DNA of 64,000 bases from Oculina patagonica (GCF_052425735.1 NC_135762.1:13578001-13642000), one strand, 5' to 3'. Counted from the stretch's first letter, positions 19,229 through 30,174 are shown. The notes: generated from the letters alone by a model not told the origin. Program-made: numbers and translations.

Positions 19229-19367
19229 TATTAGATGAAAGGCGCCTCTGAATCTCTGGATACCAGCCTACGAGTTGAATGGGCTACCCTAGCCTGCATC
19301 AAATAAAGTTTTACTATACTTACTTACTAATTATATAACACTGGTGTATTTTCTCTTTCTTTTTCAG

Positions 19368-19530
19368 GATCGCGTTTGAAGTCATACAGAACTTCGATCC
19401 AAGTTTCTGAATTAGGATGCATGCTTTATTAGATTTTGGGAGCTATTCTTAAAGTAGAAATAGCTGTAAATAGAATGTAGAACGAAACGGTGGAAATTGA
19501 ACTTGTCAATAAACACAATGACAAGCAAAA
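19368..19530 (+). other. Putative non-coding terminal exon (3'UTR) of the SVEP1-like gene; second copy at 21088-21250
   Basis: Donor G|GTAAGA at 18507/8, just after the stop. Polypyrimidine acceptor ttctctttctttttcag ends at 19367. AATAAA at 19508-19513. Confidence 0.55.
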
Positions 19531-22086
19531 AAAGAAAGTGTGTTTTATATGTGCCTAGTAAGAACTTTATTTACTAAGAATCAGCCTTTTGCAACAAACG
19601 GTCTTATGGTACAAAATCCGCCACTGATTACTGAATAACAAAAAGAGGCGACGGCCTCCAAACCAAAACGACTTCACTCGACGACTTATGCTTGATGTTT
19701 CATCATGTTCTAGTGGGTCTGAGTTTCCATCTAGCCGGCATGGTGGACTTTATAAATGTCACCGTTGCAATAGGCTCAATGAAGAGAACACAAGCAGCTG
19801 GGGCGGAAGCAGTTACTTTTAAAAGGTCAACGGACATATTATTACCAGACATAAGCTAGCAAAACTCCTACCCGCTAAAGGCCGGATAAGCTACAAAATG
19901 GACAGAACGAAGATACACAAAAACTTTGCCAACTGAGACAAACTGCATGGAAAATATCACGGAGAGCTTTAACGGGAAATTATTTCAGTAGTCCTAGCCT
20001 GTGTGCATCCCTTTATTTCTCACGGCGACTTAAACAAAAATAACTATAACCGGTGACTGTCATTAAAAAGCAAAGTAAGCAAAAACCCGATTTTAATAAA
20101 TTTTACTTCACTTATCTGATTGAATTATATTAATTAATTAAAGAGAAAATACACAGATATCCAGTTCAGTCGTTTTGATTGGCTAGACCATCCTACACGA
20201 GTTTCATGAAACACTTATAGCACCCAGCAACCTTAAAAACAAAAAGAAAACATTTGATTACTTCCCACGGTCGATTGGAAAAGCGCTCTAGTCCTGTACT
20301 TGGCCCATGATCATAAAATAACGCTTTAGTGCACTTCTTCAGTAGAACTTCGGTTTTCTTCAGAAACTAAGGTAAGTACACTGTTTCTTTTCTATAAGAA
20401 TATATTTTGGAAAGAAATTATGGCCGAAATTTGCGAAATTTTAAAAATATTTTATGATAAACCCGAGGCTAAGATTTTGAAAAGAATTACTGACTAATTA
20501 AAACTGTATAAAATTATTCCTTTCTCCAAGGCAAAACCAGCCAAAAACAACAAAAGTAGCACTAGCTGGTATGTTTGATGCTATTTCTGCAAGCAGTTAA
20601 ATTCCATACACTTGTCTTTCATACCCCAAATGCATTCTAAAATGCATTCGCAAATGCATTCGCAAATTTTGTGCTATCCCAATTCCCAAATTAAATATTA
20701 ATACGTTAAATTTTTAGATGTATAGACTGTTCACAGTCCCCGACGACGGGCCGCCATCTTGGTTCCTAAACCGAGTGAAAACTGGGGAGAGTGCAAAATG
20801 TCCGTGAGTAAGGTTGTGGGGGCGCATCCCTACCCACATCCCTACCGACAGGCTTTTTGTACTCTCCCCAGCTTCCGCTCCAATCAGGGACCATTATGGC
20901 GCCCGTCGAACCTCCACGATTGATCTCTACGACTTCACGGAAAAATAGGGGACTGTGAACAGTCTATTAGATGAAAGGCCCCTCTGGATCTCTGGATACC
21001 AGCCTACGAGTTGAATGGGCTACCATGCATCAAAGAAAGGTTTCAATATACTTACTTACACTGGTGTATTTTCTCTTTCTTTTTCAGGATCGCTTTTGAA
21101 GTCATATAGAACTTCGATCCAAGTTTCTGAATTAGGATGCATGCTTTATTAGATTTTGGGAGCTATTCTTAAAGTAGAAATAGCTGTAAATAGAATGTAG
21201 AACGAAACGGTGGAAATTGAACTTGTCAATAAACACAATGACAAGCAAAAAAAGAAAGTGTGTTTTATATGTGCCTAGTAAGAACTTTATTTACTAAGAA
21301 TCAGCCTTTTGCAACAAACGGTCTTATGCTACAAAATCCGCCACTGATTACTGAATAACAAAAAGAGGCGACGGCCTCCAAACCAAAACGACTTCACTCG
21401 ACGACTTATGCTTGATGTTTCATAATGTTCTAGTGGGTCTGAGTTTCCATCTAGCCGGCATGGTGGACTTTATAAATGTCACCGTTGCAATAGGCTCAAT
21501 GAAGAGAACACAAGCAGCTGGGGCGGAAGCAGTTACTTTTAAATGGTCAACAGACATATTATTACCAGACATGAGCTAGCAAAACTCCTACCCGCTAAAA
21601 GCCGGATAAGCTACAAAATGGACAGAACGAAGATACACAGAACCTTTGCCAACTGAGACAAACTGCATGGAAAATATCACGAAGAACTTTAAGGGGAAAT
21701 TATTTCAGTAGTCCTAGCCTGTGTGCATCCCTTCATTACTCGCGGCGAGTTAAACAAAAATAACTATAACCGGTGACTGTCATTAAAAAGCAAAGTAAGC
21801 AAAAACCCGATTTTAATAAATTTTACTTCACTGATCTGATTGAATTAATTGAAGAGAAAATACACAGATATCCAGTTCAGTCGTTTTGATTGGTTAGAAC
21901 ATCCTACACGAGTTTCATGAAACACTTATAGCGCCCAGCAACCATAAAACAAAAAGAAAACATTTGATTACTTCCCACGATCGTTTGGAAAAGCGCTCTA
22001 GTCCTGTACTTGGCCCATGATTATAAAATAACGCTTTGGTGCACTTCTTCAGTAGAACTTCGGTTTTCTTCAGAAACTAAGGTAAG

Positions 22087-22168
22087 TACACTGTTTCTTT
22101 TCTATAAGAATATATTTTGGAAGAACATCGAGGCTGAAATTTGCGAAATTTTAAGAATATTTTAAGAA

Positions 22169-23321: not shown

Positions 23322-24039
23322 TTTTACTGAGAAGACTAGACATCTAAACACAATTTTTTTATATAGTACTTTACCACTTTTTTTCAAAAGTTGCTAAAGT
23401 GTGAAACCCGATTATTTATACGCTAGAGTTTCAGAGTGTGTTTCACGAATCGTAGTACGAACGCTGCTTGCTTTTGTATTAACCCTCGGACTCACAAGGG
23501 GAGCGTGTGTGTGGGGGGAGGGGGTTGGAAGTCACCCCCTTTGAGGTTCTTTTAAAAATTTTGCAAAGAGGAATTACTCTATAATGCTGAAACTTTTAGC
23601 AACTGTTCATTCTTTCCAAGCAAACATTTTGATATGTAAAACATGTTTCTATGATATTTGACGTTGCCATGAGAACGGCTTAATTACAAGCAGGTCAAGC
23701 CCAAAATCGTCATTTTCAACATTTTTCTTTAATTTTTTCAGTTTTTTTTATATTCCATAAGCATTCTGGCTTGATTTTGCATCAATTTTCTAAGGGCTTT
23801 CTACTCAGTGCAAAACAATTTCGCTGCATCTTAATAGAACGAAAGCCCTGAGGAGGGGCACCATTGAAACCTCAATCCCCCACCCCCCCCCCCTGTACTA
23901 CGTTGGTAGTACGAAGCTAAACCCCGTTAGATTTGCACGGATTTTAGCTGCCTTCAGAGTTTTTCCGTGCATTAATCACAAGATCAACTAAATCAAAGAT
24001 TTTGAAAATATTTCGTTCAAATCGAACATGTCGAACTTT

Positions 24040-24511
24040 GTTGAACCCTCAAATGTGATAAATGCCCCTAAATGTAATATAGGTCCTAAGTGTAATAACG
24101 CGTGATCCTAAATGTAATAAAGGTCCTAAGTGTAATTACTTTTGGTCCTAAATGTAATAAAGATCCTAAGTGTAACAACTTTCGGCCCTCTGTAGTGTAA
24201 TAAAAGTTCGGCTTAACATGAAATCGTGCACGGTGCTTTTCTATACAAAAGCAAGGAAGTAAAAATGTATCATAGGGATCCAAACTATGATCTTCCTTCA
24301 ACAAACAGTTCCCATTTGCCTTAAAGCATGTGCCAAAATTTACTTTATTTTGCCGATGTCTTATTAGACATGGACCAACAGCAATAGAAGGTGATAAGTA
24401 ACAACAGATCCTTCATTACACTACAGACCTTTATTACATTAAGGGCTGAAAGTTGTTACCCATAGGACCTTTATTACATTTAGGGACATTTATTACATTT
24501 GAGACGTCAAC
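24040..24511. mobile_element. MITE with internal subterminal repeats
   Basis: gttgaaccctcaaatgtgataaatg ... catttattacatttgagacgtcaac; repeated taaatgtaataaaggtcc. Confidence 0.65.
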
Positions 24512-24821
24512 AACTTTTAACTACGCACAGTTTAACTATAGCGGCGCTTGTCCACTGAGGAAAAGTCACTGACGCAGTTTCCGAAACTCCACTGATTTAT
24601 CTGTTCGTCGAAAAGAAATAAGGGAAATCTCTGTCAATTAGAACTCTCGGCAAATCCCGTAAATAATGTAAGTTTATTTTACCTGAAATCTTTTGTCTCA
24701 TTATATTCGTTTTCCTTATTTTGTAAAATGATTTTCACTAGAGTTTCACGTTATATTATGCTACGACAATAAAGAAGGTCTGACCCTGTATTGTCGTGTA
24801 ACCCGTGTAAATCTCTGTTTC

Positions 24822-25142
24822 GAACAATACATATATTTAGGCTCATCTAAATCCGAATGCTTTAGTACTTAATTTAGTTAAATTAAAAGGTTAGTCGAGA
24901 CGTGTGTGGCGTTTTATCCACCTTTCTGCGCCGTTAAGAAGCGTTATTCACTGAATCGCTTTCGACCGTTGGCTTAATATGTAAGAGGAGACGTATAACT
25001 AAGCTAAAGGAGATTCAGTCAGTGAAATAACGCTTTTAAAAGGCGCAGAAAGGCGGATAAAACGCCACACACGAGTCGACTAACACTTCATTTACCTTAC
25101 CTGAAATATTCGGATCGAGATGAGCTTAAATATGTATTGTTC
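24822..25142. mobile_element. Palindromic MITE
   Basis: Long inverted arms (gtggcgttttatccacctttctgcgcc / ggcgcagaaaggcggataaaacgccac). Confidence 0.7.
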
Positions 25143-25983
25143 AGTACTTTATTCGTATATTTTTATTAAAAAATTGTATAGTTCGTCGATCTCGTATAGT
25201 TCGTCGATCTCGTATATCAACAGATATTTTTAAATGGTGGCCTCCCTGTGGTGACCCTAGTCGACATGATAATGGCGGCATGTTGACTTGCATGCACGAG
25301 GGTTTCAAATGACTTTGTAACGTGCGAGGCGGAACACCCTGTGTGACCGAAAAAAGGGTTGTAGACAGTTAGTATGGCAATGTTTATACGTTTTACCAGC
25401 AGAGCACATGGACCCATTGGGGCCCTATTTTAAATATAATCCAGGTGAGAAGACAGTTCCATAGTATAGGTGAGGAGAAAGAACATAACTTTAACACAAC
25501 TTTAACATAACTTTACGGTGGTGGAAAGCTCTGGTAAAGCTGGCGCAAATGTGTAATTTAATCAGCTTTATGCTATCTTTACATCTTTTTAAAGCTCACC
25601 TTTATGCCAGCTTTCCAATCAAATAGAAAGGAAGATAAAGAGACACCTTTACACCAACATTAAATCACATTTATACACGGTAGCGTAAAGGTCGATTTAA
25701 CCACCTTTAACAACATTTAATTGATGGTGTAAAGTTGGATGACCAACTTTACACCAGATTTAACCACCTTAAAGTTCACGTAAATCCCAATTTTCATATT
25801 GTGGTTCACCGTATTGTGAAAAAAAAAATCCGCTCTGTGGGGGACAGGGTCAACAGAAAAACATGACAAAAGTCAGCACCGAAAAGTCGTATAAAAAAAT
25901 TGCATGACATATTCTCTCTTGCATTTTTCATTTGTGTTCGGCATCTTTAGAAGCTACGTAGGAAGTCACAAGACTGCTGATAA

Positions 25984-26884
25984 ATGGGTCGAGTTCATTA
26001 CTTTGTACTTCTGCTGTTGGTGCTGTATTATCCGTTACGTGTCAACCCTGGGCCCGTAAAGGATGGTGATATTACAAGTGACCTCACGACAGACACAGCT
26101 GATCCGTTCAACGCTGTGGATATGATTAACTTACACAGGTAAAAAACAGTTGGCAGACACTTTAATGCAGTGCCGTAGCAAGGGGAGGGGCCGGGGGGCG
26201 TGCCCCCCCCCCCCCGTTTTTCCCCAAAAAGTAAAAACAGACCTGTATAAAATGTTGAAAATAAAACTTTATCTCCAGAGAGGTTTAAAACAATAACATT
26301 TGTACTTCTTTTCATTTTTTAACGTACGTAGGGTGATGCACAACAATATTAAACAGCCAAAAACTAAAACAAACCAGAAATCATGACTCTGAAAGGTGAA
26401 ACATTTGCTGGTTTCAAGATACAGAGACAGTGACGTTGCAAGTGTTATACTCTCTTCAATGTGCATTGGTTTGCATTGGAATTCGCGATATGCGTAAATC
26501 ACAAATAGCCCTTGGAGAACACTGGAAGTAGCATTTCCAAGCCTCTAGATTTCAAAAATTTTTTGGGGGGAATGCCCCCAGACCCCCCTAGCGGCTCGTG
26601 CCTCCGGCGCTCGCTTGCCCCCCCCCCCCCCATTTATTTTACTCTTGCTACGGCACTGCAATGTCAGCTCATCTGAGCACCAGGTGTTATTTCAGTAGAC
26701 AACTAGCCTTCGAGCGAGTTGTTCTACTCTTTAGCTGCTTTACCGTGCTGACAAGTCAAGTTGTTACAGCTGTCCACGGTTGCATTTTGGCTATCGATCA
26801 GTTTGAGCTCTTTCATGCCGATGTCACTTTAAGTGTTCTGCGTAGTATCAGCCTTGCCTATTTCATCAGTGTAAGATCTCATTT

Positions 26885-26917
<33 letters not shown>

Positions 26918-28394
26918 TTCTTTTTTTTTTGTATAATTTTTATTTGCATAACACATAGTTACATACACTATTTACAATACAAGCTACTACTTATACCACT
27001 AACAATACTTAACAACATTACGAGTTTTTACATTAAATCTTAAACCTACTTACCCACTCGCTCGCTCACTCATCACACAATCACACAATTACATACAAGA
27101 ATTCCAATAGCAAAGTTACACCTGTTTGAGCCTTATACAATGTATATCTAAGTTAACAACTTAGCAATTACATTTCCCATTTCTTCTTTAATAAATCTAA
27201 TGTATTATTTTTAGTACAAATGTATTTCTCTGTTTCATACTTTAATGCTACTTTTAATTTATAACCTCTTATATTCGGAAGTTCATTGTTTCTTCTGCAA
27301 CCCCATAAGTAAATTTTTCCTACAAGTAATAGATAATTTAGATCTCATTTTCTTAGACTGTCCAGGTTGACTAATACCATCTGCAATTGGCAATTTCCTC
27401 TCTCCCTTTACAATGTAGCGTGAGAAAAATGCTTCCTCGTCATGCCTGTTACAGTAGTTACGTTGTGTACACGTGCGTTTGGAGGTCTCTCATAACAGCA
27501 CTCGAAAAATATGCTGTAAAGACTTTTGGATCTGTCCAAACGTCAGCTGGAAATCTGCATTTATTTTCGCAATACTTTACTTTTTGTCAATTATAATTAA
27601 TATAAAAGAGAAAGAAGGGAGAAAAATAAAAATGGTATCACACATGTGTGGATAAAAATGATATTCACACATGGGTGATATCATTTTTAACCAATCAGTT
27701 CGCAGTTTGCCATGTTTCAATGCTCAATAAGCCAATTAAGTCTAAACATCTTCAGATCGTCCTCGGCAATCTTCCAATCTTCGGAAATTTTTTGGAAAGG
27801 TTCGGAACCATTCGTACGACTTTGGACAACATTTTTAAAATCTTCGGAAATCTTTGGAAACTCGTCAAACCCTCGTTATTAGTAGGTTTTATTAAAAGCA
27901 AAATAATACATGGTTTCTTCTCGTGTTCAAATCGATATATCGATTTGAACACTCGAAGATAAATTTCATATCTCCGCACAACCATGTATTATCCTTTATG
28001 ATCAACTTGTTCTTTGTAAAAAAGTAACGCATGTAGTCTCCACTGTCCAATCTTGGTTGTTTCCTTTCTTTTTTGGTTTCTTAGATCCCGCTGCCTGGCT
28101 TCCAATTCATGTTACCTTGTGTTTTCTTTTAGATCGTCTAACGTCCCTGCAAAGAGAAAATCACAAAGAATGAAGGCAAAGAAGAAATCGACGAATTTTC
28201 CTGAGCGGCTTGATGATAGTAGTTGCTCCAGCGAATCAGAACGCTCAGATCACTCCGACGACGATTTCGAACACTCGGAACTCTCCGATGATGCCCCCGA
28301 AAACCACTCGGACTGGGACGATGATTCGTTGATGTATTCCTCGGGTTCTGACCGGTGCTGTAGTCAGGCGCAGTACTCGGACGAGTCAGATTAG
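25984..28394 (+). CDS. Small secreted acidic (Asp/Ser-rich) protein, 2 coding exons, 138 aa
   Basis: Exon 1 25984-26138: MGRVHYFVLLLLVLYYPLRVNPGPVKDGDITSDLTTDTADPFNAVDMINLH, in-frame TAA immediately before the ATG, donor AG|GTAAAA in phase 2. Exon 2 28133-28394: acceptor gttttcttttag, phase 2, RSSNVPAKRKSQRMKAKKKSTNFPERLDDSSCSSESERSDHSDDDFEHSELSDDAPENHSDWDDDSLMYSSGSDRCCSQAQYSDESD*. Confidence 0.72.
26168..26658. mobile_element. hAT-like MITE in the intron of the acidic-protein gene
   Basis: TIRs cagtgccgtagcaag ... cttgctacggcactg. Confidence 0.75.
26874..27354 (-). mobile_element. 5'-truncated L1/Tx1-like LINE insertion with poly(A) and 15-bp TSD
   Basis: TSD agatctcattttctt at 26874-26888 and 27340-27354; long poly-T on the + strand; minus strand encodes NYLLLVGKIYLWGCRRNNELPNIRGYKLKVALKYETEKYICTKNNTLDLLKKKWEM*. 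Confidence 0.85.
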
Positions 28395-30174
28395 ATTTCT
28401 TTGTGTATATCAGTACTCTAGAGACTTGGGGGATGATAATTATTTCCATTCTATTCTTTATTATGGTTTTTTTTTCACTTACTTACGCCATTTCACTGCT
28501 CTTTGCTCGAAATAGTATAAATTTATAGCTAATATTTCTGAAACATAATTCCGATTTGTATGAGGAGGTTAACATATCTGGCAAAATAGTTTACTGGATT
28601 TGATGTCATGGACAGTGCTTTTAAGTGTATTTCCGGTTTTTGGACTATTTACTGTCGGAACAACTGGGAAAAGTTATCAGTTGACAAATGTAGGGAAATA
28701 ACGTGGAACTCGCAACTTTGGTGGGGGTCGGGGGTGGGTGGTTTATAATTCTGGGTAGCGAAACGTCCAACCTTAAAGTATATAGGAAACATCATGTGAA
28801 ACATGCATACGAATTTTATTTAAAAGCATTTTAGTAGCGCTTTTTCGGTTCAGAATAAAAATTTAACAGAATCAGTCTTTGTCCAGTTTTAAGTTTACAA
28901 ATGACCAGAAGTTTATATTTATGGTATAAGAAGCAAATACAGTATGTCACACGATCAGTCAACCGTTGTAGGTAGTAATTATTTACAGACAAGCTGTCGC
29001 TACTACCAAGATTTCACGGCTAACAATCCTAAATTCAGTTTCGTTTTTTTCAGTCGGAAGGTACTTTCGCTACTTATGGTAGAGGCGGGATAGGGGCTTT
29101 ACGTTTTTTGGAAATGCTCATAATCTCCTAACCCTGTGTTGCATAGTTTTTACACAGCCTTTTTTTACGTTTTTTTACCTTCTTCCGCCCTGATTTTAGT
29201 TATACAGCTGTGTAACCGTGCGTCACCGTGCGAACGAAGCCAGCGCTCGGGTCGGAGCGAGGGAAAAGTGCCACGCACTCAGACGACCTTTTTAGAAAAT
29301 TAGAAGGTATGATAAGAAACAGTTTTGAACTTCAAAAACATTGCCAGAAAAAATACGAACTGGTTTATTTAGTTGGAGGATTTTTTAGTAATCATTCCGG
29401 AGATTGCTGGCACAAGCAAGTAACCTAACTGAACTTGACTATTAAAAAGTTATCTAGTGAAGGCGGTGAGGAGGTGGGGGTGATGAAGGAAGGGGGGAGG
29501 GGGGGGGGTGGTTAAGGAATCCTGAAGCTGAACGCATTTTTTGCGGCGCCTTTTTGCTAAGCAGTATTTTGTTTTTAAGGTAAGAGCTCATCTCTTTCCT
29601 GTGTCGGTCGCCGTGCGTAAATTTTTTTGCACAATTTTTGCATGCTAGAAAAAAAAAAGAGCGCTCTTTTTTGTATTTCTTTTACCTCCATAACTTGCAC
29701 GAAGAGAAAATTAATCCATTTATCTGAGAGGGATTATTAATGAAATGAAGCTGATCTGTCAGCTTATAACCTCGTGCCAACAGATTTGTTGAATTAAACG
29801 ATGAAAGAAAAATAAAAGCAACTGATTTAGTGCGACTCCGACAGCAACTTCCTTGTAGTGCACATTAGTCCATGAAAACAGCTGTGTTTAATTTCTAGTG
29901 GTCGTTCCACCATGGATAGTAAATTTTTTACTTATTTTTTTACTATCCATGGTTCCACACAAGTATTATAACAACTGCATTCCCAAATTCATACAAATTC
30001 ATACAAATCACTTCTCTGCCAGTATTTTCTATTATTTTCATTTTTTTTTTTCAATCGGGTGACCCAGTTCTTTAGCGTCGTCAGGCTTCCATTAGCATTG
30101 ACTTTCACGCACAGCTTTAATTTGCCAGACTTTCTGGTAAGTTTCCAGAGTTTCGCGAATCGAAATCAACGGTT

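Follow-up and report, generated by a model that had tools for sequence, protein, structure and literature searches.

The secreted acidic proteins SAP1 and SAP2 are known from Acropora and other complex corals (Ramos-Silva 2013, PMC3748352; Conci 2019, PMC6824150); Amil-SAP1 and Amil-SAP2 contain 19% and 21.6% Asp+Glu, respectively (PMC3748352). SAPs are taxonomically restricted, and an in-silico screen for acidic proteins applied a cut-off of 9% Asp (PMC6824150). CARPs and SAARPs are larger, with two long Asp-rich blocks (~20% Asp) and family-defining conserved non-acidic regions between them (PMC3748352). Here we describe a previously unmodelled gene on the plus strand of a 64,000-nt stretch of Oculina patagonica DNA (NC_135762.1:13578001-13642000; hereafter the window, whose numbering is used throughout), which encodes a protein of 138 amino acids (aa) with an isoelectric point (pI) of 4.6. 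We are close to certain that this protein-coding gene is real. Its Asp content, 15.2%, lies above the 9% cut-off and its Asp+Glu content, 20.3%, agrees with the ~20% of the operational secreted acidic protein; the resemblance is one of kind, by composition, and not one of family membership. Judged from sequence, the best reading of its product is a new acidic and disordered protein, secreted and taxonomically restricted.

The gene has two coding exons. Exon A (25984..26138; 51 codons and 2 nt, aa 1-51) begins with the ATG at 25984, directly preceded in frame by TAA at 25981-83 and, before it, TGA; the start context ctgataaATGG is kept in five orthologous lineages. After 155 nt the donor GT at 26139-40 opens a phase-2 GT..AG intron of 1994 nt (26139..28132, acceptor AG at 28131-32), which is inflated by transposable elements and is removed in RNA contigs. 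Exon B (28133..28394) supplies 1 nt, 86 codons and the stop TAG at 28392-94, and the 155 + 262 = 417 nt join in phase to give 138 aa and a stop. An earlier note on this DNA had proposed just such a 51-codon ATG exon, with a preceding in-frame stop and a phase-2 donor fitting the acceptor at 28133 to yield 138 aa, and the sequence matches its proposal exactly; the note's word "hidden" is also apt, the libraries searched holding raw open reading frame (ORF) fragments only and no spliced gene model. The 3' untranslated region (UTR), 28395..28766, is conserved in sequence with the orthologous contigs L007 and L001; its exact end is approximate, the RNA contigs ending at 28713-28766 and an AATAAA lying beyond, at 28854-28859.

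A spliced transcript, a conserved open frame and frame-specific purifying selection were all found at this locus. An index of public sequencing runs was sampled with words of 25850-28650, and contigs of three RNA-type runs that differ in study and organism label (X1, X4 and X5) and of the DNA-like run X21 were aligned to 24000-29900. Locus words (5-34% of those sampled) turned up in 16 RNA-type runs, which belong to 6 studies. In X1, X4 and X5, contigs join 26136 to 28131, skipping 1994 nt with GT..AG ends; with the cut moved by +2 this is the 26138^28133 junction that the earlier note had offered for checking by spliced reads, and it is absent from X21. One 391-letter contig of X4 matches exon A over 188 letters without a difference and exon B over 109 letters with a single one, and RNA depth in the unique intron stretch 27349-27545 is 0/0/3. 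The depth of X21 indicates a single copy of exons A and B (~20-40), against thousands for the intronic repeats.

The transcript does not begin with the ATG exon. In X1, X4 and X5 the match of the contigs ends at 25949 and is followed by 17, 57 and 94 extra non-matching letters, and an AG acceptor with a pyrimidine tract is found at 25949-50. The break of the RNA contigs at this AG indicates that the ATG exon starts at 25951, with a 5' UTR stretch at 25951..25983, and that the transcript has one or more non-coding leader exons farther upstream, before 24000. Thus the two-exon gene of the earlier note stands as regards its two coding exons, but not as a whole transcript, which has at least three exons. 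The exon starting at 25951 has a stop in all three frames, the ATG frame being closed by TGA TAA, and therefore no upstream exon could extend the N-terminus.

Orthologues were collected by word-based protein searches with each exon peptide and by a HMMER profile search, and the contigs retrieved represent six other lineages. Both coding exons are found in L006/L007 (149 aa, intron 710-711 nt), L011-L015 (140 aa, intron 383-384 nt) and L016-L018 (146 aa, intron 662-817 nt), which with the window makes four lineages with full two-exon ORFs of 138-149 aa. L008/L009 also have both exons, in a shortened form where a frameshifting deletion ends the frame before the CC motif; L001-L005 (aa identity 88% in the alignment, 81% by tblastn) and L019/L020 provide exon B only. 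Contigs that hold both exons all keep the GT donor, the AG acceptor and phase 2, and exon A aligns without gaps to five other lineages at 61-92% aa identity. L007 is located on an 896-kb contig collinear with 12.6-32.9 kb of the window, downstream of a TSP1/sushi-type gene, which places the orthologues in conserved synteny; a search for paralogues within the window yielded none.

The ratio of nonsynonymous to synonymous substitution rates (dN/dS, Nei-Gojobori method, dS ~0.3-1.2) ranges over 0.07-0.28 in exon A and 0.16-0.41 in exon B. For the whole coding sequence it is 0.17-0.25 in the claimed frame, against 1.05-2.1 in the two shifted frames of the same nucleotide alignment. Substitutions concentrate at third codon positions (e.g. 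28/18/52), and indels among the orthologues are all multiples of 3, except for the L008 deletion. Met65, the start of a 72-aa ORF call (P0001), is not present in three lineages, so that translation from the ATG of exon A is required. Taken together, the in-frame selection, the open-frame indels and the loss of Met65 indicate that selection acts on the protein that starts at 25984. Conservation of the ORF in relatives, on which the earlier note had made its gene depend, is thus observed as purifying selection in several related stony-coral lineages.

The N-terminal part of the protein, aa 1-23, forms a hydrophobic signal-like helix, modelled at residues 2-19: R3 is followed by a very hydrophobic stretch of 13 residues (aa 4-16) and then by P17-L-R-V-(K/N)-x-G, with a 7-residue Kyte-Doolittle maximum of 3.9 and 15 apolar residues between the flanking R3 and R19. 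A hydrophobic region of 13 residues fits a signal peptide and is too short for a typical membrane span. The rest of exon A (aa 24-51), in which a second helix is predicted at 43-48, is mildly acidic, as is aa 24-57 as a whole; this part contains the invariant VDMIN and, at the start of exon B, the conserved RSSN[VF]P (RSSNVP here), within the wider motif D[PS]F[NK][AV]VDMIN..RSSN[VF]P. Directly thereafter comes the basic block with a dibasic KR (28149-28187) reported by the earlier note; its first dibasic pair is indeed conserved, as KR, KK or RR, the remainder varies in length, and the site is without a furin-type P4 Arg.

The acidic Ser/Asp tail (28209-28391) has 61 aa, and our recount gives exactly the composition previously claimed for it: 15 Asp, 6 Glu, 17 Ser and three HS[DE]. 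The emphasis of the earlier note on HSD/HSE and S-x-E motifs fares less well: three HS[DE] are present here, but they are absent from L006, L011 and L016, and S-x-E sites number only 2 here, these three orthologues having a single one each, alongside 3-6 sites of the CK2 type, S/T-x-x-D/E. The conserved pieces of the tail are C-S-(S)-E-S/T-E, SDDD[FY], SE[LY], G-S/T-[DE]-R-C-C and a YSD-ESD-like end, with SDW in most lineages; three Cys, including the CC pair, are retained by all orthologues that have this part of the protein. The tail is predicted to be unstructured, lacking secondary structure at a predicted TM score (pTM) of 0.13. Asp stands in runs of 3 at most, and poly-Asp stretches are absent. 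Orthologues have 11.6-15.0% Asp and 16.4-22.9% Asp+Glu.

Searches for known families returned the orthologues themselves. Pfam scans with both exon peptides and the orthologues gave nothing above noise, and the word-based protein searches gave 2 and 4 clusters, all of orthologues. A HMMER profile of exon B matched, among 1.84 billion representatives, only orthologue ORF fragments and one 1469-aa BIR/RING protein, the latter rejected as a chance match of acidic low complexity; the protein is lineage-restricted, as the earlier note had supposed. Feature searches of a protein atlas reached best scores of 0.57 and 0.75, under the useful level. A dockerin-like look of exon A was rejected, inspection revealing no EF-hand or dockerin loop. 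Accession numbers of the homologous contigs occur in no searchable paper. An ATP-grasp gene, which would suit a small Asp/Ser-rich protein serving as a ligase substrate, was not noticed in the window, though no search aimed at one was made.

How could such a protein act? We estimate a probability of about 0.6 that it enters the secretory pathway and acts as a disordered polyanion, perhaps after dibasic cleavage. The Leu/Val-rich helix of aa 4-16, between R3 and R19, would direct the protein into the endoplasmic reticulum (ER); by heuristics, a signal peptide is the most likely identity of the N-terminus. The remaining chain would be an intrinsically disordered polyanion with a net charge of ~-15 and a pI of ~4.4, secreted or held in secretory vesicles. 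Processing at the conserved dibasic pair ([KR][KR]K following RSSNVP) could separate an acidic N-terminal peptide of ~35 aa from a Ser/Asp/Glu-rich C-terminal piece of ~70 aa; release of the tail by a convertase is possibly encoded here, at the level of sequence only. The three conserved Cys, including the CC pair, could form intermolecular disulfides. Once secreted, the polyanion would be a low-affinity, high-capacity binder of cations or basic partners, candidate targets being skeletal mineral, mucus or extracellular matrix, or granule cargo.

Several observations weigh against this reading. The signal peptide proposed by the earlier note holds as a hydrophobic, signal-like segment, but in most lineages no cleavage site obeying the (-3,-1) rule is within reach of the hydrophobic region; a canonical T-G-A|L occurs only in L016, and the likely site at G23 has K or N at -3 and often P at +1. 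Residues 1-23 are as constrained as the remainder (proportions of synonymous and nonsynonymous differences, pS 0.475 and pN 0.117), with LVLY[YF]PLRV invariant; cleaved signals are seldom conserved so strongly, and the segment could instead be an anchor that stays uncleaved. As the main rival we consider, though find improbable, a small single-pass membrane protein, its conserved N-terminal helix an uncleaved signal-anchor, e.g. a short span of the ER/Golgi type, and its basic block and acidic CK2-type tail, facing cytosol or lumen, serving sorting or scaffolding. It draws on an N-terminal constraint at least equal to that of the remainder (pN/pS 0.25 vs 0.34), the invariance of the core motif across six lineages, the missing canonical signal-peptidase site, and the acidic clusters with Ser, which are classic trafficking motifs. 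However, just 13-15 apolar residues between charges, with Pro at 17, are short for a span, and the most distant lineage varies the helix freely yet keeps it hydrophobic and gains the canonical TGA|L, as is typical of a signal peptide. Further points against the secreted polyanion are that the basic block also looks like a nuclear localization signal (NLS) and that the tail is rich in CK2-type S-x-x-D/E sites, which are common in cytosolic and nuclear proteins. Finally, L008 (2502-2740), L009 and the ORF call P0008 end in ...DDDGGY, without CC...YSDESD, by way of the frameshifting deletion. The presence of that deletion in two different sequences makes it probably real, and L008/L009 would represent either a shortened protein or a decaying gene. 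The lost CC...YSDESD end can be read in another frame of L008.

The secreted, disordered polyanion admits more specific versions, which we consider less probable. The earlier note favoured a skeletal-matrix or metal-binding protein with an acidic tail that a convertase may release. In full, this would be a skeletal organic-matrix protein that calicoblasts secrete; the tail, perhaps a Fam20C-type kinase substrate that a convertase sets free, would bind calcium and control aragonite growth. This is possible but unlikely, as is its extension to a new stony-coral family of convertase-processed secreted acidic phosphoproteins in calcification (skeletal matrix or calcium-vesicle), missed by annotations and hence by skeletal proteome searches, which we regard as equally doubtful. 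The skeletal version shares all features of the best explanation; Asp and Asp+Glu lie within the range of confirmed coral SAPs (PMC3748352), coral skeletomes include taxonomically restricted acidic proteins (PMC6824150), and the homologues are all on contigs resembling stony-coral holobiont assemblies, with none elsewhere among the 1.84 billion proteins. On the other hand, word-based, profile and Pfam searches detected no homology to CARPs, SAARPs, SAPs, acidic skeletal organic-matrix proteins (SOMPs) or SIBLINGs, poly-Asp blocks are missing, S-x-E sites number just 1-2, HS[DE] is not conserved, and acidity with a signal peptide is not specific to mineralisation. The motif strings are also absent from the A. 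digitifera skeletal-proteome supplements and the searchable literature, a weak negative, since an unmodelled gene is outside proteome search databases. The tail also holds a tryptic piece of ~37 residues, which would escape standard searches of spectra.

A precursor of the regulated secretory pathway, similar to those of neuropeptides, hormones or granins, with either the 35-aa segment ending RSSNVPA or the tail as its active product once the signal is removed, would account for the conserved dibasic site directly after D[PS]F[NK][AV]VDMIN..RSSN[VF]P and for the acidic disordered flanks, a typical feature of prohormones and granins. We find it quite improbable, as there are no repeated peptide copies and no amidation Gly before basic residues, Pfam scans and atlas searches gave no similarity to known cnidarian peptide families, and the tail is conserved too and so is not a mere spacer. 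The remaining possibility, that exon 2 alone encodes a nuclear acidic protein from Met65 (the 72-aa P0001) or that the transcript is non-coding or transposon-derived, can be given hardly any credence. The NLS-like basic block, the 72-aa product of the ORF callers and the repeat-filled intron speak for it; against it are the low dN/dS of exon A with its many synonymous changes, the loss of Met65 in three lineages, the conserved phase-2 junction, the single-copy DNA depth of both exons and the absence of any transposon or Pfam domain match. The earlier note had itself allowed that exon 2 might belong to a transposon or a nuclear protein; it is single copy and matches neither a transposon nor a nuclear family, and both readings were rejected on selection, copy number and the non-conservation of Met65.

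Two sequence variants touch the coding exons. A second form of exon B (28210-28382) is expressed that differs at 12 of 173 nt, 7 amino-acid changes standing against 3 synonymous ones (a ratio near 1). It occurs alongside the reference form in the RNA runs X1 and X4 and is the sole form listed in X21, and may be a divergent allele or else a paralogue of very recent origin. In L010, a 976-nt contig of the L011-L015 lineage with exon A only, the donor at 850-860 reads TACCGG|GTAAC instead of TACAG|GTAAC; this one-base insertion would alter the splice phase, a sequencing error being possible in a single contig.

The non-coding leader exon has a candidate, with its promoter, at 21661..22081 on the plus strand. 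The similarity of this block to the syntenic L007 continues to 22081, where a perfect AAG|GTAAGT donor stands (the block ends in ...ACTAAG, with GTAAGT from 22082), and is lost beyond it; an inverted CCAAT-like GATTGG is conserved within the block. The candidate ends in AG, in agreement with RNA contigs that match 2 letters into the acceptor at 25949-50, and RNA runs contain just 1-2 of its 25 sampled words. A near-identical tandem copy ends at 20371, being part of a ~1.1-kb tandem duplication (19306-20377 and 21045-22087) that is single copy in L007 (3726-4900); each duplicate ends in the same donor, which may provide two alternative leader exons or promoters. The leader exon ending at 22081, or its duplicate at 20371, stays an unconfirmed candidate. 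In L016 (2990-3028), of the most distant lineage, a TATA-like gctatataaag precedes the ATG by ~35 nt and no in-frame stop is present upstream of the ATG; this lineage may be without an intron in its 5' UTR.

The intron is longer here than in the orthologues (1994 vs 383-817 nt) because of two insertions and a high-copy repeat. A MITE-like insertion (miniature inverted-repeat transposable element) at 26166-26660 is bounded by terminal inverted repeats of 17 nt that match perfectly (26166-26182 and 26644-26660). One X21 DNA contig skips from 26145 to 26654, an empty site in another individual or species, which makes the insertion recent or polymorphic. The second insertion is an antisense retroposon at 26889-27339 with a poly-T tract (a minus-strand poly-A); the 15-nt target-site duplication on its two sides (26874-88 and 27340-54) is perfect and reads AGATCTCATTTTCTT. 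The orthologous intron of L001 lacks this retroposon, and copies elsewhere are transcribed, RNA contigs continuing from them into unlike sequence. Just before the acceptor of exon B, at 27546-28136, lies a very high-copy repeat, with a DNA depth of up to ~39,800 vs ~21 for single copy and a 22-nt palindrome at 27916-27959. The intron block 27339-27535 was considered as an exon and rejected, having no RNA depth and ~78% identity with the nearer lineages only.

Lists of coral calcification genes draw on annotated models, and a small gene of two coding exons with a repeat-swollen intron is missed by them. Being expressed, conserved and of the composition by which secreted acidic proteins are nominated as calcification candidates, this gene can be added to proteomic search databases and to single-cell marker lists. 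Should its product turn out to be skeletal, a family found in stony corals only would be added; otherwise the gene still illustrates cleanly how a disordered orphan can be under constraint, with a signal segment conserved to an unusual degree. In both cases, current coral annotations lack genes of this sort.

Among the systems to which the protein may be compared, CARP4/5 and SAARP1/2 are likewise acidic and Asp-rich, with a proposed entry into the secretory pathway (PMC3748352). In contrast to their long blocks, here there is one mixed Ser/Asp/Glu tail, with Asp at 15.2% in the protein, Asp runs of at most 3 and Ser as abundant, and no homology. The likeness to granins and prohormones is architectural only, consisting of an acidic disordered chain, a conserved dibasic site and, here probably, a signal peptide; granin motifs and repeated or amidated peptide units are not found here. 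Vertebrate SIBLINGs and other secretory-pathway phosphoproteins (Fam20C substrates such as osteopontin, DMP1 and caseins) have a signal peptide, as this protein probably does, and a disordered, acidic, Ser-rich chain. The analogy is functional only: Fam20C substrates are defined by clusters of S-x-E, of which there are 2 here and 1 in orthologues; homology is lacking, and so are RGD and ASARM-type motifs. From SAP1 and SAP2, for which Shinzato 2011 is reportedly also a source, the protein differs in having no sequence similarity detectable by word-based or profile searches, and in being known from genome and RNA sequence alone, whereas theirs were found in the skeleton by proteomics. With them it shares a small size, a taxonomically restricted distribution, a domainless chain, an Asp+Glu content of about 20% and, probably, a signal peptide.

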